Source of the DNA: Paragordius varius
Lineage: Eukaryota; Animalia; Nematomorpha
Length of the DNA stretch: 64,000 bases
Direction: 5' to 3'
Assembly (NCBI GenBank): GCA_964247055.1
Contig: OZ176054.1
Span: forward strand, 12,586,001-12,650,000
Every line of letters begins with the position of its first letter. The stretch's first letter is position 1. Of this stretch, positions 1-61,210 are shown piece by piece. A program made the position numbers and the translations under genes. Under the pieces are notes generated by a model. The model was not told where the DNA came from. It was given only the letters and a program-made list of their open reading frames with translations, and ran no database searches.

Positions 1-78
1 AAATTAAGACCGTTTCCTTCAGTAGTTTTTTAAAAATCCTAACTTAAATTTAGTCTGGGGTATATTCGAATCGAAGTG
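1..78 (-). mobile_element. Terminal fragment of a piggyBac-like MITE (family P)
   Basis: Reverse complement matches the left arm of the copies at 21787 and 28635 (ATACCCCAGACTAAA...CTACTGAAGGAAACGGTC). Ends GAAGTG|TTAA. Confidence 0.75.
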
Positions 79-94
79 TTAATGATGAGTTATA

Positions 95-188
95 TTAGCC
101 CGAAAACACATGATTTATTTTTAGGGTGAATTTAAATTGTTCGATGGTAATTTTGAATTGTTCAAAGGGGAATTTGAATTGTAAATGG
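95..188. mobile_element. Arm of foldback-like MITE family A (21-bp subterminal repeats)
   Basis: GGTGAATTTGAATTGTTCAA-type units ending TGTAAATGG|TA, as at 29580-29698. Confidence 0.75.
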
Positions 189-3080
189 TATATATATATA
201 TATATATATATACACGAAATTTATATTATAGCATATACTTTTGAATAAACAAATTATTTTATTTCCATAATTTCCCTCCAAAAAATGCAAGTTATATCAA
301 AAATATAAGTTACGGGTATATTCTGCCCATAAAAGCTCCAATATATAGTTAATGTATTAATTACTATCTATGGCATCAGATCCCAAAAAAATTTTCTTTC
401 TAGCAATCAACTAAATATACCTACCACATATATATTAAAATATGTGTGACCAAAAGGTGGCACGTATTAGAACAGTACATAAATATGTTGTATTTTTTAT
501 AATTTGTACACAGCGCACGTGTAATTTATATTATTATGTTTTTTTAGCACACAAAGAAGTGCCATAATTGTTTTTATCAAAGGTGCCGACACACAAAGTC
601 CAATAGATAGCTTTCTGTACTTTTTTTGCGCTTGTAAAGTTTTAGCTTTTTTAGTCAAAATATGGATTAAATTGTTAAAGGTAGTATAGAAATAATAAGT
701 ATAGCCGTTAAAGTTTAAAGGTATTACCAAATTTTTTTTTAACAGTGTTTTAACGAAAAAAAAATCAATTTTTCCTCAAAACATTTTAGATAGTGCATGA
801 AACCAGTCAGTTTTGACATCTAAAGTGCTCTGCACCGCTTCAGTGCAATCATAATTATATCTTATATATGAACTATGGCGGTATAAAATATGTGCTTAAT
901 AATAGGTGGTATAATTTAAACTGTTGTAACTATAAAGCAGTATGAGCTTATTTAATGTTTAAAAATACTCCTCGAGATAATTTTTAAGGTACAAAAAGTT
1001 TCGTTTCGTCCACTGAAAGATATAATTAAATGATTGGAATAACAGGAAACGTAAACCTTTGTCGGCATTCCCAATTAACAAAACACAGGAAATTCAAAGA
1101 GCCTTATTATACACTAATTTTGCATTACAATAGAATTACACATAATATATAATTATCTTGAACACTTCATTTTTGCGTGTAATTAAATGAATTAGCGCTT
1201 TTGTAAATAATATATAACTAATTTACCGACAAAAGAATTTTACAGTGTTCCCAACCTATCTAAACCATAAAAAAACAATAAAAAACGAAGCGGAGAGGCA
1301 AAGGTCCAAAATTTTTATTGATGTTGCCATGCAAATAATTTAATAACCAACCAGTAATTATTATTTTATAGTATAGTTTCAAATTTAATTTTTTTCTATT
1401 ATTTCATAAATGCCCTGTCTGTAAATTGAGATTTAGGAGTAATAAAATATAGACATAGTTGGAAATTCTCTATATTACAGTACCGTTTGTCATACATAAA
1501 GTTTCTCCATAATTAATTAAGCAATTTAATGTTAAAACATGGGAATTTATTTTTGATTTCAACCATTTATTCTTTGTTACCATACGCTACTGTATTTATC
1601 ATTTCAAAAAAAAATTATAGAAAATAAATTTTACAAAATTTTTTTGGAAGGATTGACAAAGAAACGTAGGAAAAAAATTAATTTTAATTAAGTTTTATAC
1701 ATAAATATGGAAGGATACTATACTATAAACGATAAATGGTGTCACCAAATTTAGGTTTTAGGAAAAATAATTATGATGAAGATCTGATCTGCTTCCAAGT
1801 AAGGAACGAAATATATATGTAATAAAGATAAAATAAGCTTGATTTATAGCCTTTTTGTGTTGTTAGCTATCTATCCCATTGATGTCTGGTTTTTTTTTGA
1901 TGATTTAAATGCAAAGAAAACACTAAGAGACAAATTAAATATAATATTTTATCTTTTTGTCAAACAAAGACGACTTACTTTAAGTTTGAGTAAGACTGAC
2001 CCCCTTCATGTTTGTGTGTGCCTGTATTTGTCATAAATTATAGGATAATTTTGTCAACTACTATCTTATCTTTTTTGCCAAAATTTTATGGACATATCCT
2101 ATCAGTATCTGTAAATGTATGTACTTGCTTTTATACTTTTCAAAGATAAAAAAATGTAAAAGATGTAAGGGAATCAATCTTTAAATATTTCAATCAAAAT
2201 TTTTTAAATTGAGCATGATATAATCTCAACACTTATGTTATATATTAAAGTCTTTATATATGTAATCAATTAAGTATGATATACATGCCCATGTTTAATG
2301 TTTTCTCATATATCATATAAAAAAGGGCTTTTTGGTTTTTTAGGCGAGGGTTTAAATTTTTACAGTTCATTCAGCTATAATTCGATACTGAAAGTTTAAT
2401 TTAAAAAATACCCAACCTATATTAATTTATAATTTGTGTCGCAAAAAATGGCAGATGCACCAAAAAACTCTTGATTAAATGGTTTCAATACACATGCTTA
2501 CATAAGTTGCGACACTAAAAATTGATAGTATAAAACAACGCCAATAATTAAAATAAAAAAAAATCACCCGAAAATATTTTTATTGTGAACCCATTGAGTT
2601 CTTCTAAAATTGGTCGCAATATGTTGCTTCCCAACAAATGTTTAAGAAACACATGTGAATTTCGGTCAAAGACACCGTCATGAGATCAATAATCGAAAAA
2701 AATATATAAAATAATTTAAAATAAAACGATTATATTTCACGGCGCAATTTCAATACAGCCTTCATATGTATGTTCAATTTAATTTCGCATTAAAATTAAA
2801 CTGATGTTAGAAGATATTTGTTTAAAAAAGTGTAAAACCTTTTAAAATACAGCAAAAAATTACATTTTAAAGACAAAATTTCAAAAAAGCTAATTTTAAT
2901 TTTAATATAATTGCAATTTGATATAATAGTGTATCCCAATTTCACCTCAGATTCCCATTTCCTTAACTAAAACCATGAGTTATATATATATATATATTAA
3001 TCTTTTAGTTTTTATTTCTGTGTCCAATTTTAATTTTTACTGTATAAAAGCATAAGTTTGGTTTGATTTTATAAAAATAC

Positions 3081-3206
3081 TTTAATGTAGAGATCAGAAC
3101 AATCCATAGATTGAGGCGTATGTTGTAATATCATATATGCTATCCAGGGTTCCTCAAAAAGTCTACTGGCATGTGTCCATGGATGACATAATGATAGTGG
3201 GTAAAC
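3081..3206 (-). CDS. ZNRF3/RNF43: Coding exon 2 of an RNF43/ZNRF3-like E3 ligase (PA domain): VYPLSLCHPWTHASRLFEEPWIAYMILQHTPQSMDCSDLYIK
   Basis: 126 nt, open, phase 0/0, flanked by CATATAG| and |GTATTT. Aligns by eye to ZNRF3 MHPLGLC...YGWVGVVKL...PCLTVLGK and RNF43 SHPLYLC...PCLSLASK (recalled sequences). Not in the ORF track. Confidence 0.85.
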
Positions 3207-3253
3207 CTATATGATATGAACAATTATATTTTCCCATCTAAATGCAAAAACTA

Positions 3254-3522
3254 CAGTAAAAGAAATTATACGAACAAATGTAAAAATATAATAACAAATA
3301 TTTTTTCATTAATTTTCCCAAATAAATTAATTAATTACAGTTGTAAAATATATGATTGATCGTGTTACCAATATACATCTCTAATTCATACTTTGCATTT
3401 GTTCTAAACAATGAATTAATTATAAGTAAAATCAAGATTTAAGAAATATATGGATGTCTTTTAGAAAAAAATATTTGTCTTAATATATTTACGTTTTGTC
3501 CGTATTATTCCAATTTTTACTG
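3254..3522. mobile_element. Tc1/mariner-like MITE family D, intronic
   Basis: TA|CAGTAAAA...TTTTACTG|TA termini, with inner inverted arms TTATACGAACAAA / TTTTGTCCGTA. Confidence 0.7.
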
Positions 3523-5007
3523 TAAAAGACAACGAAACAATCTTTTTTAAACCTTAATTTCTTCTGCATAATCTACTATTCTGCCACCCAAAATGCGTTA
3601 TAACTAAAATAATCAAGTTTTTTTTAAAAAAAGTCATTTAATTTTTACGTTACGTCTGCATTAATTTTTTAGATTATGATATAAAAAATACATTATACAT
3701 CATACACTACAAAGATATCTTGATATTCCTGACACAACCCACCAATTGCCTTATAGTAAACGAAAGATTTTTAGAACTCATGGGCAAAAATATTATTGAA
3801 GAATGTGCTTTGGCCATATTATTATACATGATAACTAATATGGCTAATATCATGAAAGTTTATTTTCAAATAACATTAATTTATATATGTTAAGTTTATA
3901 ACGGGGAATTTACAATTAATAAAATCAACGCTGTAACAATCGAAATGTGATTTGTTTGGTAGGAAAAAAAACAGGTCGTCTATGGGTAAGTTGCGTATTA
4001 TCAAAAAAAGTATATCAACTTCTATGGTATCTTAAAATTGAAGCCAATATTTCTTTCATTTTTGACATTTGACATGGTGAAGTCTAGATCGCAAAAATAA
4101 CCGAAATCGCGCGATATGTGTTTATTTTTTGAAAAGACAGACTTTTTGCTTTTTTTGCATAATTTGATATCTATATTAACTCACTCATATCACCTCAAAT
4201 TTACTTTGCCGAATTTGTTTCCTAAACTAAGTTATTAAAAACTTATAAATTGGTTGCGAACAAATTGTTTAATCAGAATTCTGAATGGATATTCTCTGTG
4301 GCATTGAATGATGTAAAAAAGTTATTTTTATGCCTTAAGTACTTAGAATATTTAACGTACATAAAATACACAGGTTTTAGCATAAATATTTTTTTATAAA
4401 TATAATTTTATTTTTCAATTTTGGAATATCCTATGGTATTTATACAACGATGTGGATAAAATATTACAATGCTCTTTTCCAAAAATAAAAAATGATATTA
4501 ATAAATGGGTTACTTTTTAATTCAAAAAGTTTTCGTTAGTTCCAAAAATCCGCTATTTACCTGCTTATTCTATTTTTAACGAATGATTAATCTAAATAAA
4601 TTTTTTTAAAAAAAATGGTAATATCCGATTGCGAATTGTTGACTATAACCATATTTTAATCATCGGAAAAAAGTGTAATAATACTTTTTACCCACTGATA
4701 ACACCGAAAATATTGTTGGGCTAAATGTAAAAACTTGATTTCGATAGCCTTTAAGGCGTAATATTAAACTATGCAAAGTTTCACATTTCTCGATTTATAG
4801 ATATTTAATCTTTAGTTTCATATATTTTACTATAACATGTGGCATAAAATTTCGTCAATTTTTTAATCAGCTGATTATTAAATAAGTTACCGTCAATTAG
4901 CTAGGCTTGTCAAAATATATTCAAATGTAACTTTAAGTATAAAATTTTTTGATAAGTTAACATATTATATAATGTATTTTAATCCACAAAATACATTAAA
5001 ACTATAG

Positions 5008-5050
<43 letters not shown>

Positions 5051-5466
5051 TTCTTAAACGTAGGAAAATGCGGGAAATATTAATTTTTTAAAAAAGTAGT
5101 TATTTAGTTAATTTTTACATTAAAACTTGTTCAAATTAATAATTAATACATATTAAAGTGTTAACACGTTTTACCTGTACATCCTTTCTTCTTTCTAACT
5201 ATTGTAGTTTTGGCAAAAAAATTCTTTCTATTTGCTTATTCATGGTTTAATCATCAGAATAGGATAAATTTTGTAAATAAAGTTATTTGCCTATTTTTTT
5301 AAAAATATTTATGAGATTTCCGCACTAAATTAAAATGGAAAAAATGAAAATTTTAACATTTACCTATATATGAATAAGTTAAATTTTTAAGGCTTAAAAG
5401 AATTATTGGAGCAAACACATATAATTGATAATATATTTTTTGTATATAAAATTTAAAAGATCTAAC

Positions 5467-5982
5467 CTCCATAAGAATCCCTCTCACATTCATCCGTGTA
5501 CCAATTTCATTAAAATTTCCAAAAACAGAAAAATCGCCAATGCGGTTTAAAATTGGCTGCTCTTTTTCTTTCATTGATTTGGAAATATTGTTTGGGGTTT
5601 TCCCGCGATGTGCATTATCATAAAAATAATTTTGCACATATCTGTAATGAGTGTTTTGCCGCGTTTCCAATCTTTGATAAATGGAAAAATTTAATAAAAC
5701 GTTATTTTCTGTAATGATTGCATCATGGGACTGATTGAACGCTTTTTTAACACCATACGAATTTTTCAGAGTTGGAGTAGAATAAAAATTATGATCTGTT
5801 ATAACTGTAGATGTATTTATATGGTTTGGCAAAGATTGATTTTTAGGACTGAGAAATGATATGTCTTTTGTCATATCGTTAAGTCTTATAGATAAAGAAT
5901 TGAAGCGAGAAATAAGCTGGAAAACCATCATTCCACCTATCATTAAGATCCATTGAAGCATACTGCGAGGCCAGCTTTTCAT
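5467..5982 (-). CDS. ZNRF3/RNF43: Coding exon 1 of an RNF43/ZNRF3-like E3 ligase: signal peptide, N-glycosylated linker and start of the PA domain (172 aa)
   Basis: Longest intact non-TE ORF. Hydrophobic N-terminus. Ends VFGNFNEIGTRMNVRGILME, cf. RNF43 [20 protein letters not shown]. Donor GAG|GTTAGA at 5466 is phase 0 and joins exon 2 in frame. Confidence 0.85.
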
Positions 5983-6708: not shown

Positions 6709-6890
6709 CAGTAGCGTATGCAGTAAAAGATTGTTAGTGCAAAATAATCTTAATGAACACAAAACAGGGGGACAATTTTCATATATTAATTATCATTCAG
6801 TCCTATTTATAAACATATCCATAATATCCCCCTGTTTTGTGTTCATTAGGATTATTTTGCACTAACAATCTTTTACTGTATACGCTACTG
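6709..6890. mobile_element. Tc1/mariner-type MITE family C, 182 bp
   Basis: About 60-bp TIRs CAGTAGCGTATGCAGTAAAAG.../...CTTTTACTGTATACGCTACTG, with TA on both sides. Confidence 0.9.
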
Positions 6891-7375
6891 TATATACAAA
6901 TTGTTTTATTTCCGTAAAACTTTTTGACTTTAAGTAAAAATATGCCAAAACAATACAAAAATATATTTATTTTATATTTAGGAATGACAAAGTCATTTAT
7001 TACATATTGTGTTAACATAATATTATTACAATTTGATTACAAGAAAAATACAAATTGTAATATCCTTATTTCTAACTATTACTAATGTGGGTTGATGACA
7101 CCTAGGTTTTTTATACATTGTATTTCAGGGGTATTTTTACATAATATTAAATAAAGCACAAAATGAAAATTGCAACGTGTAATTCTGACTAGTTAGTGTG
7201 TGAAAGATACAAATGGGTTCATTGAAATTTTGCCTATTTTTTGGGTAAAATATGTTAATTTTTAAACAAATTTTTTACATGTAATATTCATGATTAAGCA
7301 TATCTTACTTATAAAGTTTTCCTCTATAATTATGTATTGTATGACATTGTCACACTTAATTTGAGAAGATAAATA

Positions 7376-40858: not shown

Positions 40859-43800
40859 CAGTGGTCCTCAAACCGGGGCCCGCGGGCCGCACGCGGCCCT
40901 AGCTTTAAATTTGCCCTATGACCATATTGATACTTAAATTATATTTTTATTGATAAATTTTTTAAAATACACATGTTTCGCTAATTTTAATATTAATTTA
41001 TTTTCATTTAATTGGTAATTTTTAATATTTATCCATACGTAGAAAAATTCCCTATAAGATGATATAAAAATTTTAACACACGTTGTTTTTATTTCTGTAT
41101 TCTATTTTCTTTGATTGGTTGGTTTTTCCAAAGTCGTAAACGACTTTTTGGATATAGTTTTTACTATTTCTTTCCATTTTCTTCTATCTTTTGCCGCTAA
41201 AATAGGATCGTTTAATGTCATTTTAGTCTCTTTTTTTATCGTATCCAACCACCTCATCGATGTCGGCCTCGTTTCCTTTGCCCTTCTACCTTCCCAATTG
41301 TATCGTTCTCTAGAAAATTCGATCGCATGACATGACCAAAATATATTAAATTTCTTTTTAGATTTATCTCCAGAATGTTTGTTTTAGGTTTTATTTCTGT
41401 AGTTAGATTTCCATTCTTAATTATCCTTCCAGGTGTATCCTAGCATACGCCAGCAGCTCCTTTCAAAAGCCATGAGCATTTCTTTGTCCCTTTTTCTGAG
41501 AGTCCAACTCTCACATCCATATGTGGTGACCGGGAGAACGAAACAGTAGGGTAATCTTTTTTTGGTTTCAACTCCTACGCTTTTGTTTTTCCAAATCTTT
41601 ATTAATTTGGTCATCGCCTCTACCCAATCCTATCTTTCTGATGTCAAGAGTTGAAGACCCATCCTCTGAAATTATTCCCCCCAAAAATGTTAACTGTTTA
41701 ACTATTTCTATTTCTACTCCTTCTATAATAATTGTAGGCTTTCTCCAGTACAGTTTGGTTTTGTTAAGATAAGAGTGGTATCGTCTGCAAATGTTAAATT
41801 ATTGATTGTTCTTCCTCCTATTCTTACTCCAATATATTTACCACTAACTTCCTCATTATTATTTCTGTGCACATATTGAACAGATAAGGGGATAAACAAC
41901 ACCCTTGCCTGACTCCTTAAAAGATAGGTATTTCGTCTGTGTCCCCCGCTGATGTTCTAATAATCGCTCTTTGTTGTACATAGAGAGAGCTAATCAATCT
42001 TATTTAGTGAGACGATACCCCTACAAACTTAAATGTTTCCCACAAGGAGTCATAGTTAATGGAATCGAAGGCTTGCCTGTAATCAATAAAAGACATGTAT
42101 AATTCTTTCTGGAACTCTTTAGATGTTTCTCTTATCCTTCTCATGTTTGAGATATGGTTTCTTGTGCCTTTTCCCTTCATAAATCCGGCTTGATTTTCTG
42201 ACTGTATGATACTGTGCATCCTGTTTTGTATTATTTTTAGTAAGACCTTACTAGCGTGGCTAATAAGAGATATGTTCCGATAGTTCTCGCACTGGAGTAC
42301 ATCTCCTTTGTATATTGGATGATAAACCGATGATATCCAGTCGTTTGGCCACTCACATGTTTCCCACACCTTTTGACATAACTTGTGTGACGTTTCTACC
42401 GGAATAGCTTTTATGAACTCTATTGGCATATTGTATAATCCCATCGCTTTGTCGTTAAGAATTTGTTTTAAGGCTAATTCAACCTCCTCTCTTAGTATAT
42501 CTGGATCACGTTCTTCTTCTTCTTTTAATTGCAACACATTTGCTTGAGGAGCTTGATAGAGTTTTTGGGTGTATTCCTTCCATCTTTCTCGTACTTCTGT
42601 TTGTTTGCACATAATGGTGCCATCCTCTTTTTTAATCTTTTGGGATGATATAAAAGGTTTATGAATTCTCTTCAGTTTCTGGAACATTGGTTGCATTAAT
42701 CCTTTTTTATTATTAAAACTTCCAGACATTGTTTATTAAGAAAATCTTTTTAATCCTTCCTTGTTTGTCGTAATTTAACCATTTTATTATCACCTCTTGA
42801 TTTAGCTTTTCTCCTCTTCCCTGCTATCTCTAAGCTCTTTTCTGATATCCATTTGTTATCTTTCTTTAGTCTCTGCACTTTTTCTTTTGCCACTTCATTA
42901 ATAAAAATTTTTATCGTTCCTCATAATTGTTCTGAGCTACATTCGTTGTCCAATCTTTCTAATATTTTAAGTTTGATTTTGAGTACTAAAAGCTCATGAT
43001 CGCTAGAGCAATCGCTGCTTTTGCTTGTTTTGGTATCGAGTATAGAGCCTTTGCATTTTGAGGACATATTATGTAATCAATTTGGTTCTTATATTTACCA
43101 CACGGATAGGTCCATGTGTATAACCTCCTATTGTGTTGTGGAAACCATGTGCTGGTTATCATCATCTCATTTTCTTGACAAAAATTGATCAGTGCTTCCC
43201 CGGCCTCGTTTCGTTTTCTCCCAATCCATATGGGCCAACTATTTGATTTACTCTACCTCTACCAGCTTTGCTGTTCCAACCCCCTCCTATGATAATCATA
43301 CTTTCTTCGTTTCATCCAAAACTATTTGCAACTTTGCATAAAAATCCTCTATGTCTTCTTTGGAAGAGTTTGACGTAAATAGACTACTATGTATATAAAT
43401 TTAAGTGGCTTGGCATTCAGCCTAATACTCATGATTCTGGATGTATATGGTGTATAACTAATGAGACTTTAATTTAATTTGTTTTTTTATTAATACTGCA
43501 ATGCCTTCTGATTTCTGGTCATCTCTCCCCAATCTTAACAATGTATAATTTTCGTGTGGTTTCGCGCTACCTTTTTGCTTGGTTTCCGTTAGACCCAGTA
43601 TATCTAAGTTTAATCTCATTTCCTTTTCAATTATCACCTGTTTGGTTTCTGTTAATGAACGTACGTTCCAGCATCCAACTTTGAAAAGTCGCCTTAAGTT
43701 CATATAGTAAACTATTTTTTGGCAGTAATAAAACGAGGGTGGTTTGCCATTGCCTTCCCTCTCACTTACCCTCTTTACAAAAAAAAATAAAAAACACAAA

Positions 43801-58519: not shown

Positions 58520-61210
58520 ATTTATTTTTTGTCAGGAGGCAGCTTAGAATCCGTTAGCGATTTATAGTGTACTTTTAAGGTGTAAAAGACACGTTCCACC
58601 AGCCCATTTGTTCGTGGATGATAGGGGGCACTAGTGACATTTTTAATGTTTATTCGTTGCAAGGTATATTTAAAATCCTTTGATGCAAAATATGATGCAT
58701 TATCGATTATCATTCAGGGAAATCCGTACCTTACACACCAAATTTCAAACCAATGTAATATGTTTGCGGAATTAACATTTCTCAGCAACTCGACTTCAAC
58801 CCATCTAGGTACTATCGATAGCTACTAACCAATAAAACCCATCAATAGGACCGGCAATATCCAGATGTATCCGTTCCCAGATACCCGTATTAAAATTCCT
58901 TTTGTACGTGGAATAGCTTTTTATGTTACTCCGGTTTAACTCCCATATCTCACATAACTTTCGGTGTCTATGTTTATACCTGGCCAACAGAACCCTTGCC
59001 TTGGCAGACTCTTTCATAACATTAGCCCCTGAATGTCCAAAATGCAAAAATTTTAACGTTTCATTGCGCCACGCCCTGGGAATAAAAAGACGATCGCTCC
59101 AATACAACAAACCATATGATTCTTGTATTATGTTTCTTATACTCAATATCGAATTTAAAATTGGAGATGACCAATCATTATGATGTAGAGCCGCTTGTAA
59201 TGTCAACAACTCATCCCGTAAAGTATTTTTTTTTGATTCGCTGTACGTTTAAGTTGTCTGTTGTTAAGTTGATTTGCCCTACTGGGTGCTTGCTCCTCAA
59301 CCTCCTCAGTCGGTTCTTCATACGGTAGACGTGATAACCATTCCGCCAAATTTTCCGAATATTGTATATTAAAATTATAATCGGCTGTTCTGAGTATCCA
59401 TCTTACTAATCTACTATTGTTAATATTACTTATATCTCTCTTAAAGTCAAACAACTTGATTAGGGGTTTATGATCGGCTAATAATACGAACTTTCTGCCA
59501 TACACAACCATTTTAAACTTTTCTAGCGCATATAAAATTGCCCTTGCTTCTTTTTCAATCACCGAGAAATGCCTTAGCACATTTTCGAGACGCAAAAGCT
59601 ATCGGCCGTTTTCCATCACTTGTCATATGTGTAAAGACTGCTCCGAATCCGTCATTCGATGCGTCTGTTTCCAAAACTAACGGAAGCGTCGGGTTAAATT
59701 GTATTAGACATAATGCATTACTCACCAACAGTTTAGCTATATCAAAAACCATCTCTTCTTTTGTCGACCAACACCATTTCTTAGAACCTGTAAGCGCATG
59801 TAAATCCGCGATCGTAGCATGCAAGATGGAATAAAACGAGCGTCAAAATTTAATATTCCCAAAAAAGACCGGAGTAATGTTTTATTGGTAGGTGTAGGTC
59901 AATTCGAAATTGCTTTTACCTTTTCGTTATCAGGTTTAATTCCTTTGTCTGAAATTATATATCCTAAGTATGACACTGAGCAACGAGTTAATTGGATTTT
60001 ATCCCTTTTCAATTTCAAACCCACAGCAGCTAATTTGTTCAACACTTTTTCTAAGTTATCCTTATGCTCCATTACCGTTGTTCCACTATTAATTACATCA
60101 TCTAAGTAAACCGCCGTACCTGGACAATCTTTTAATAACTCATCCATAATTTGTTGAAATATCGTGGGTGCACTAGATATTACAAATAGCAGTCTTTTAA
60201 ATCGAAAAAGACCTATATGCGAACTAAACCTGAGTAAATGTTGATAATTTTGGTGGATAGACATTTGCGAATAGGCTTCTTTTAGATCTAGGGTCGTTAA
60301 AACTTTTCCCTGCCCGATTTGAAACACTAACTGATCAAACGTTGGACTCAAATGATTGACAGGAACCAGACTTGGGTTAACAGTAACTCTAAAATCACCA
60401 CATATGCGAATATCATTATTATTCTTCTTAACTATCACCAACGGAGTTACCCAGTCAATTCGTGTTTGCGAGGTGTTTATGGCCTCAATGATACCCAGAC
60501 TTTAAGGCCTTTTCAATTCACTCTCCACCTTAGACTGAAGAGGGATAGGTACCCTCTTGGATGCAAATCTTTTGGACATACTCCCTTTTTAAAGAAACAA
60601 CTTGATGGGTGGTCTCGTATAACACCCAATACCCTCACAACAAATCCTTAAATTTATTTAAATCCACATAACTAACATTCTTACACAGAGAGCATCTGGA
60701 AATCTACATTGAAAACTTTTCATTCACGGTAACCCAAATATGTTACCCCAATGTTTGACCATACCATTCCATTTAACATCCACCACGCATTGTCTCATCA
60801 TCTCTACACCTTGCATCCACGTGCTTTTCCCAATCAATGATATTTGAGCTCCGGTATCGTACAACATCCTCACCCAATGGCCATTTAGTCTTGCTTGCGT
60901 TCGGGCTTTATTATTATTATTGTTACCATTCACTATATTAACTCGCCGGCAACACCTGCCAAAATGACCTCGTCCTTTGCATCGGTAACACTCTTTGTTT
61001 GAAGTGGAACACCAGTTGATCGCATACACGTACCCACATTTTCCACACTTCTTTTTTATTATCATCACCTGCCTATTGTCCGAACCCTGTTCAATAAAAC
61101 AACTATCCGCCTTTTCGTACGACATTGCCATTTCTACCATCCTTTCCAACTTAACAGGTTTCCCATCAGACATTTCATCTGGAAATTTCGTGAACAGATC
61201 TATCTCCAAT
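58520..61210 (-). pseudogene. Fragmented gag-pol: CCHC knuckle, protease (LYDTGA), RT (YLDD), RNase H (LETDASN), integrase (IIDN...YHPRTNGLVER)
   Basis: ORF track pieces 60724-61209, 59899-60441, 59555-59824, 59203-59595, 58805-59209 and 58522-58713. Confidence 0.9.

Follow-up and report, generated by a model that had tools for sequence, protein, structure and literature searches.

The closest described counterparts of the probable ligase reported here belong to nematodes and vertebrates. In vertebrates, the tail that follows the RING domain of ZNRF3 and RNF43 carries a Dishevelled-binding region, recruits Dishevelled and bears a phospho-switch. In Caenorhabditis elegans, PLR-1 (Y47D3B.11), a RING-H2 ligase of 487 aa, crosses the membrane once, carries a signal peptide and has a PA-like ectodomain; it acts in an animal devoid of R-spondin/LGR control. 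PLR-1 reduces surface Frizzled by means of its ectodomain and its RING (PMC3937510, PMC7291719, PMC13208016), the latter being located at residues 317-358 and followed by ~130 further residues (PMC13208016). R-spondins are missing from invertebrate models, and PLR-1 nonetheless down-regulates Frizzled (PMC3937510, PMC7291719). A review table contains an entry for plr-1 in C. elegans and none for Drosophila (PMC10686798), in agreement with the original prediction for this locus, which had stated that C. elegans has PLR-1 and that Drosophila lacks a clear orthologue. The succession of signal peptide, PA-like domain, transmembrane (TM) segment and RING-H2 is also that of the Goliath/Godzilla/RNF13/RNF167 type, and PA-TM-RING ligases share an ancient common ancestry (PMC3937510).

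We analysed a locus of Paragordius varius that, judging from its sequence, probably codes for a very divergent ZNRF3/RNF43/PLR-1-type membrane RING-H2 ubiquitin ligase, a reading to which we assign a probability of about 0.68.

Exon-intron structure

The window, i.e. the whole 64,000-nt stretch of DNA that was analysed, contains two exons that most likely constitute the 5′ end of a predicted single-copy gene of seven exons on the minus strand. Exon 1 (5982-5467, minus strand) starts with ATG, is single-copy in the genome and comprises 172 open codons ending in phase 0 at GAG/GT, the last codon GAG (5469-5467) being followed by GTTAGA. The entry of the open reading frame list that contains it extends over 5353..5982 on the minus strand (209 aa). 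Exon 2 (3206-3081, minus strand) has 126 nt or 42 codons, is in phase 0 at both ends, has a G+C content of 0.37, and is flanked by catatag before and gtattttt after, which provide the AG and GT borders. Joining the 172-codon frame at GAG/GT to this 126-nt exon, as originally proposed, was borne out, with open frames, AG/GT borders, phase 0 and the translation as quoted. At 25% G+C, stops should make up 8.8% of codons, which gives a 172-codon open frame a probability of ~1e-7. The corresponding value for 42 codons is ~0.02, and the length of exon 2 is therefore not significant by itself.

Intron 1 (3207..5466, minus strand; 2260 nt, GT..AG, G+C of 0.23) harbors an (AT)n run as well as a non-coding MITE-like dispersed repeat of ~275 bp with inverted ends (3252..3524, unstranded), which lies 46 bp upstream of exon 2 and has more than 100 genome-wide matches on both strands. 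Repeat matching against the whole genome revealed that every exon is unique. A repeat-derived origin of the exons was ruled out, as repeats are confined to the intronic stretches.

Intron 2 (minus strand) measures 3827 nt in total and occupies positions 1..3080 of the window, the gene running on to the left. There, on the same strand and reaching up to 11.5 kb beyond the window, lie two further ectodomain exons, exon 3 (L010 9253-9179; G000:C5 12585253-12585179) and exon 4 (L010 8742-8542; G000:C5 12584742-12584542), followed by the TM exon 5 (L010 7899-7798; G000:C5 12583899-12583798), exon 6 with the first part of a RING-H2 domain (L010 5412-4966; G000:C5 12581412-12580966) and exon 7 with the rest of this domain and the stop codon (L010 4601-4473; G000:C5 12580601-12580473). 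TM and RING-H2 exons had been anticipated to the left of the window, and both are thus present in the expected orientation. All six introns of this sequence-level model are GT..AG and in phase 0, and the G+C content is 0.30-0.40 in exons compared to 0.19-0.26 in introns. For exon 6, another possible acceptor is located 33 nt further on.

The long introns (2.3-3.8 kb) with their transposons, together with the weak splice acceptor of exon 6, could suggest that these exons do not form one functional gene at all, exons 1-2 instead coding for a secreted protein and exons 4-7 for a separate TM-RING protein, or that the locus is a decaying pseudogene. However, none of the seven exons contains a frameshift or an internal stop, and each of them is open, compatible in phase and enriched in G+C; the ectodomain signal is complete only when exons 1-4 are joined; and exons 4-7 alone lack a start codon plus signal peptide. 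We thus consider both scenarios highly improbable and retain the single seven-exon gene.

No convincing open, G+C-enriched frame was found past exon 7 before the next gene, an NSDHL-like gene (L011 ~7111). For this reason, the stop located 13 codons past the RING was taken as the end of the protein.

Predicted protein architecture

The predicted protein of ~531 aa, a type I membrane protein, comprises a signal peptide, an ectodomain, a TM helix and a RING-H2 domain. The start methionine is followed by basic residues and then by a signal-peptide-like hydrophobic stretch of 19 residues (aa 7-25, Kyte-Doolittle mean of 1.54). The remainder of exon 1 is largely a long N-rich extracellular stretch with five N-x-S/T sequons, forming a predicted N-glycosylation-rich N-terminal extension of ~95 aa. 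We propose from the sequence that the last ~30 aa of exon 1 correspond to the first strands of the ectodomain, which would then span ~145 aa, encoded by the 3′ end of exon 1 together with exons 2-4. The ectodomain contains just two cysteines, both in exon 2 (exon aa 7 and 36), where 14 residues separate the W and the C that correspond to the PA-type motif, with no C-x-F. Exon 3 contains the motif R-G-x2-A-x-I-x-D.

In exon 5, the highest Kyte-Doolittle mean over 19 residues is 2.69, compared to at most 1.6 for all other exons, which points to a single TM helix between the ectodomain and the RING. A predicted cytoplasmic linker of ~135 aa connects this helix to the RING-H2 domain at about residues 478-520, beyond which 13 residues remain before the predicted end of the protein. 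All eight zinc ligands are present, in the arrangement C-x2-C-x14-C-x-H-x2-H-x2-C-x10-C-x2-C. The domain is split between two exons, C-x2-C ending exon 6 and C-x-H-x2-H-x2-C-x10-C-x2-C being encoded by exon 7, and in a Pfam scan exon 7 scored 39.7 bits against zf-RING_2, over the 27.3 cut-off.

Family assignment

A six-frame search of the whole genome (110 Mb) with ZNRF_3_ecto (PF18212) returned a single candidate, exon 4. Located 643 bp upstream of the TM exon and in the correct orientation, this candidate aligns with the C-terminal third of ZNRF_3_ecto (68-105/105). In a Pfam scan of exon 4, ZNRF_3_ecto was the sole family match (E of 0.017, 15.6 bits, model positions 70-105/105), below the gathering score of 26.2. 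This test was independent of the first reading of the locus, because that reading had used exons 1-2 only. The proposed RNF43/ZNRF3 (PLR-1)-like identity gained partial support in that the one Pfam ectodomain match at this locus, on exon 4, is to ZNRF_3_ecto and not to PA; with 15.6 bits, below 26.2, orthology stays putative.

Searched one at a time, exons 1-3 had no match in Pfam or the PDB, and exon 4 had none in a PDB sequence search. The solved ZNRF3/RNF43 ectodomains were not reached from single exons with phmmer, the similarity being too low. No homologue of exon 4 was found by phmmer at E ≤ 0.001 among 1.84 billion representative proteins, none was found for the exon-1 open reading frame (209 aa) or for exon 6 in a search whose length limits excluded full-length kin of single exons, and the ESM Atlas yielded no usable match for exon 4 or exon 1. 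Single exons are unlikely to reach distant kin. These blanks, i.e. exons 1, 4 and 6 lacking a homologue in very large protein collections and the Atlas and PDB searches remaining empty, are what would be expected of a lineage-specific single-pass RING-H2 ligase whose ectodomain is unrelated to that of ZNRF3 and whose Pfam match is due to chance. Against this explanation, a chance match is improbable for a family that had been predicted beforehand from other exons, the per-model probability being ~7e-7 (E of 0.017 over 24,736 models). Furthermore, the match falls at the right place, on the right strand and in the right segment of the model: only 23 exon matches to zf-RING_2 exist in the 110-Mb genome, exon 7 is among them, 4 kb downstream of the exon 4 candidate, and we estimate at ~5e-4 the chance that a ZNRF_3_ecto candidate and a RING exon co-locate within 5 kb on the same strand. 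A lineage-specific origin therefore appears quite improbable.

The RING half of the protein is, by its sequence, a generic RING-H2. Compared with solved structures, it scored 25.6 bits with human ZNRF3, 28.2 with RNF13 and 50 with RNF4, scores by which ZNRF3 and RNF13 are not separable. The slightly higher score with RNF13 is in line with another possibility, namely that the gene codes for a divergent PA-TM-RING member of the Goliath/Godzilla/RNF13/RNF167/GRAIL branch, acting in endosomal trafficking and not on Frizzled, with the ZNRF_3_ecto match merely reflecting a shared PA-like fold. The overall architecture is identical in that branch, the R-G-x2-A-x-I-x-D motif of exon 3 is generic to PA-like domains, in which it is widespread, and the PF18212 score is under threshold.

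A genome search with PA (PF02225) nevertheless gave C2:9841643-9841870 as its sole candidate, which belongs to a different gene of Goliath type on a contig other than that of the ligase, and no candidate at the ligase locus. This Goliath-type gene displays the classical W-x8-C-x-F-x2-K motif, with C-x-F-x2-K near the W strand, and a Goliath-like juxtamembrane stretch. Its R-x-G-C-x-F-x2-K core motif is absent from exon 2, and its own equivalent exon shows no cross-match to ZNRF_3_ecto, whose only candidate in the genome is at the ligase locus. As a control, the PA-type gene of this genome was scanned exon by exon, and its 40-aa exons were also missed; exon-level scans are thus too insensitive to exclude PA, and the missing PA match at the ligase locus counts as weak evidence. 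Altogether, we consider membership of the Goliath branch unlikely and favor the ZNRF3/RNF43/PLR-1-type assignment.

According to the original prediction, human RNF43 has phase-0 introns after Q84 and K125, and the phase-0 introns between exons 1 and 2 and between exons 2 and 3 of the present gene would fall at these alignment positions. A literature search on RNF43 splice-site variant names for human exon boundaries turned up only other genes. If true, shared intron positions with RNF43 would be the most informative point in favor of orthology.

Comparison with known ligases

Compared by description, the predicted protein resembles PLR-1 in its signal peptide, putative PA-like ectodomain, single TM segment and RING-H2 domain, and the two are of comparable size (about 531 aa versus 487 aa). 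The two differ in that the P. varius protein has the ~95-aa N-terminal extension and the ~135-aa linker from TM to RING, and in that its RING is followed by 13 residues instead of ~130. The domain order equals that of vertebrate ZNRF3 and RNF43, exon 4 has its sub-threshold match in the C-terminal third of ZNRF_3_ecto, and there are two ectodomain cysteines in each case. We take the RING-H2 spacing of ZNRF3 to be identical to that given above, and the W-to-C spacing of the ZNRF3/RNF43 ectodomain to be about 14-15 residues, likewise similar. Unlike the vertebrate proteins, the predicted ligase seems to have no long C-terminal tail, and the Dishevelled-interacting region would thus be absent. 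This point counts against the ZNRF3/RNF43/PLR-1-type assignment. A further difference is that no R-spondin was detected in this genome.

Proposed function

By analogy with PLR-1, ZNRF3 and RNF43, the ectodomain and the membrane part would position the ligase beside Frizzled-type Wnt receptors. The RING would then recruit an E2 enzyme and ubiquitinate the cytoplasmic loops of these receptors, which would be endocytosed, thereby damping Wnt signalling. On this analogy, the ligase would lower surface Frizzled. The genome contains at least two Frizzled genes, and a search for R-spondin-type furin domains gave none over the cut-off. This combination fits the published R-spondin-less action of PLR-1 (PMC3937510, PMC7291719), and control of the ligase by R-spondin would not be expected in this animal.

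Significance

This gene is an expected gene of a known ligase group and not a new kind of system, and it reveals no new mechanism. A very AT-rich worm genome thus gains a probable Wnt-receptor ligase of the ZNRF3/RNF43/PLR-1 type, whose gene is too divergent for ordinary annotation. This gene would also provide a ligase that naturally lacks the tail, with which one could ask what parts of these enzymes are required to find Frizzled. As a tentative extension, possible but on balance unlikely, the protein could represent a PLR-1/ZNRF3-type ligase reduced to a minimum, which stops directly after the RING and dispenses with a cytoplasmic tail, having instead the long N-terminal extension of the ectodomain and the TM-to-RING linker. 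Should a tail-less ligase still clear Frizzled, targeting would proceed through ectodomain or membrane contacts or through the linker, which would argue that targeting by way of Dishevelled and the tail was a later addition. PLR-1 is already known in nematodes, the sister phylum of horsehair worms. If our assignment is correct, the PA-TM-RING branch that Drosophila lacks would be retained not only in nematodes but also in another lineage of ecdysozoans.

Structure of a seven-exon TM-RING-H2 ligase gene

A gene model proposed earlier for the minus strand joined a 172-codon open reading frame, cut at GAG|GT, to a 126-nt exon. The observation was confirmed in the sequence: within a 209-codon frame opened by an ATG at window position 5982, exon 1 (5982-5467, minus strand, 172 codons) ends in the codon GAG (5469-5467) followed by GTTAGA, and exon 2 (3206-3081, minus strand) stays open over all of its 126 nt, between ...catatag on the 5′ side and gtattttt on the 3′ side, with a translation identical to the one first quoted and both junctions in phase 0. 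At the base composition of this extremely AT-rich window (C5:12586001-12650000, ~25% G+C), an open frame of 172 codons has a probability of about 1e-7 and one of 42 codons a probability of about 0.02, which is no proof by itself. G+C content is 0.37 in exon 2 compared to 0.23 in the intron.

The original prediction also called for TM and RING-H2 exons left of the window, and both were found there on the minus strand. Examination of 30 kb of that strand in three frames revealed five further exons, each AG/GT-bounded and all in phase 0, in L010, the adjoining stretch of the same contig (C5:12576001-12586000; L010 coordinate = window coordinate + 10000). Exon 3 (L010 9253-9179, minus strand, 25 aa) carries an R-G-x2-A-x-I-x-D motif and is followed by exon 4 (8742-8542, minus strand, 67 aa) and exon 5 (7899-7798, minus strand, 34 aa), which codes for a TM helix (Kyte-Doolittle mean over 19 residues, 2.69). 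Exon 6 (5412-4966, minus strand, 149 aa) ends with C-A-I-C plus 8 residues, and exon 7 (4601-4473, minus strand, 42 aa and a stop) supplies C-x-H-x2-H-x2-C-x10-C-x2-C, so that the RING-H2 ligand pattern is complete over the exon 6|7 junction, with a first spacer of 14 residues. Exon 7 alone scores 39.7 bits against zf-RING_2 (Pfam cut-off 27.3). Searches were run by single exon; only base-composition figures were computed over exons jointly (G+C 0.30-0.40 in exons, 0.19-0.26 in introns). All seven exons, including 1 and 2, are single copy in the genome searched (110.6 Mb, 44 contigs), repeated DNA being confined to introns 1 and 5. From its sequence, we consider the gene to be real; that its pieces do not form one working gene is very improbable.

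The predicted protein, ~531 aa from summed exon lengths, consists of a signal-peptide-like N-terminus (aa 7-25), an N-rich extension of ~95 aa containing five N-x-S/T sequons, a ~145-aa ectodomain with just two cysteines, both encoded by exon 2, the TM helix, a linker of ~135 aa and the RING-H2 domain. Since no convincing additional exon was found 3′ of exon 7 up to the next same-strand gene, the protein probably ends 13 residues past the RING. That neighbour is NSDHL-like, has a Rossmann-type G-x-G-x2-G in its starting exon (6755-7111, minus strand, in stretch L011 of the same contig; C5:12572755-12573111), and offers a syntenic anchor for locating the orthologue in other assemblies.

A MITE-like element of ~275 bp (window 3252-3524), whose inverted ends measure ~55-65 bp, lies in intron 1, 46 bp upstream of exon 2; over 100 matches to it, 70-85% identical, are spread across all large contigs and are frequently clustered, as at C1:14449-14451 kb and C5:13012-13031 kb. 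The same intron holds an (AT)n microsatellite of ~40 bp (window 5019-5062), and similar runs elsewhere give short spurious DNA matches. A foldback element of ~1.9 kb occupies part of intron 5 (L010 5591-7512, or C5:12581591-12583512); its two ~650-bp inverted arms are 89% alike, and many genomic copies exist, often as two arms separated by about 1.6-1.8 kb. Elsewhere in the window, G+C-richer patches result from retrotransposon remains, namely a reverse-transcriptase fragment at 42004-42729 (minus strand) and, at 58805-61209 (minus strand), a set of RT, RNase H and aspartyl-protease-like ORFs split among several frames.

Probable assignment to the ZNRF3/RNF43/PLR-1 branch

Because the proposed RNF43/ZNRF3/PLR-1-like identity drew on exons 1 and 2 only, the exons outside the window can test it independently. 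When the whole genome was searched in six frames with ZNRF_3_ecto (PF18212), a single candidate emerged in 110 Mb (C5:12584614-12584727, minus strand), namely exon 4; the alignment covers model positions 68-105 (of 105), where the ectodomain ends, and the TM exon follows 643 bp downstream. Among all 24,736 Pfam models, ZNRF_3_ecto was the sole match of exon 4 (E = 0.017, 15.6 bits; per-model P about 7e-7), but this score is below Pfam's cut-off of 26.2 bits, the exon spanning just one third of the model. Exon 7, which follows 4 kb further downstream along that strand, is one of only 23 exon-level zf-RING_2 matches in the genome at E≤0.001; by our estimate, the lone candidate would by chance lie no more than 5 kb upstream of such a match with a probability of about 5e-4. 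Exon 2 has 14 residues between the W and C corresponding to those of the classical PA core W-x8-C-x-F-x2-K, and lacks its C-x-F motif. We take the W-to-C spacing of ZNRF3/RNF43 to be 15, similar to that of exon 2, and assume that these proteins have just two ectodomain cysteines, at matching places; human RNF43 may, as first proposed, share phase-0 introns after Q84 and K125, residues that presumably fall at the aligned positions. We assign the gene to the ZNRF3/RNF43/PLR-1 branch with a probability of about 0.7; it would be a new, highly divergent addition to a family already known.

Exons 1-3 searched singly matched nothing in Pfam or the PDB, a homologous-protein search with the exon-1 ORF and exon 6 within a restricted length range returned nothing, exon 4 had no match with E≤0.001 in a set of 1.84 billion representatives, and the ESM Atlas yielded nothing usable. 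An unrelated lineage-specific TM-RING ligase would fit this silence, yet given the ZNRF_3_ecto match of exon 4 we consider it improbable. Against solved structures, the scores of the RING half were 50 bits (RNF4), 28.2 (RNF13) and 25.6 (ZNRF3); by these values it is generic.

The whole-genome search with PA (PF02225) also returned a single candidate (C2:9841643-9841870, plus strand). The open frames there contain the W-x8-C-x-F-x2-K core in its classical form, together with a basic juxtamembrane stretch resembling that of Goliath; this is the animal's Goliath/RNF13-type PA-TM-RING gene. In L013, the stretch around it (C2:9840143-9843370), a short intron interrupts the PA domain and a separate exon carries the basic stretch; its RING exon is absent from the 23 genomic zf-RING_2 matches. 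As the 40-aa exons of this bona fide PA-type gene were likewise undetected when scanned singly, it is weak evidence that exons 2-3 gave no PF18212 match and our gene's exons no PA match. The equivalent PA-type exon did not cross-match ZNRF_3_ecto (one control). A divergent Goliath/RNF13-type ligase, with which the RING scores are compatible, is unlikely. In the six-frame searches, exon-level matches for common animal domains were very few (one PA candidate and 23 zf-RING_2 in 110 Mb), reflecting either a reduced gene set or poor exon-level detection in an AT-rich, intron-rich genome.

Predicted function and relation to known members

ZNRF3/RNF43 multi-ubiquitinate the cytoplasmic loops of Frizzled, leading to its endocytosis; C. 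elegans PLR-1 acts likewise, requiring its own ectodomain and RING and the Frizzled CRD, and invertebrate models lack R-spondins (PMC3937510, PMC7291719, PMC10686798). The originally noted presence of PLR-1 in C. elegans and lack of a clear Drosophila orthologue agree with a table in PMC10686798. Our gene is predicted to encode a protein with a signal peptide, an ectodomain poor in cysteine and one TM helix, its complete RING-H2 facing the cytoplasm. Two or more Frizzled genes are present in the genome, where no furin domain of the R-spondin type scored above its cut-off. From this layout, these genes and the published mode of action, we infer that the ligase would most likely clear Frizzled in a PLR-1-like manner, independently of R-spondin.

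The long N-terminal extension and long TM-to-RING linker set this protein apart from known members. The tails of vertebrate ZNRF3/RNF43 run to several hundred residues and include a Dishevelled-interacting region, whereas this protein apparently has no tail; if the 3′ end is right, no tail-borne Dishevelled site would therefore be usable for substrate targeting. PLR-1 (487 aa, RING at 317-358; PMC13208016) has about 130 residues after its RING, compared to an apparent 13 here. A PLR-1-type gene would be expected in a horsehair worm, whose phylum stands next to the nematodes.
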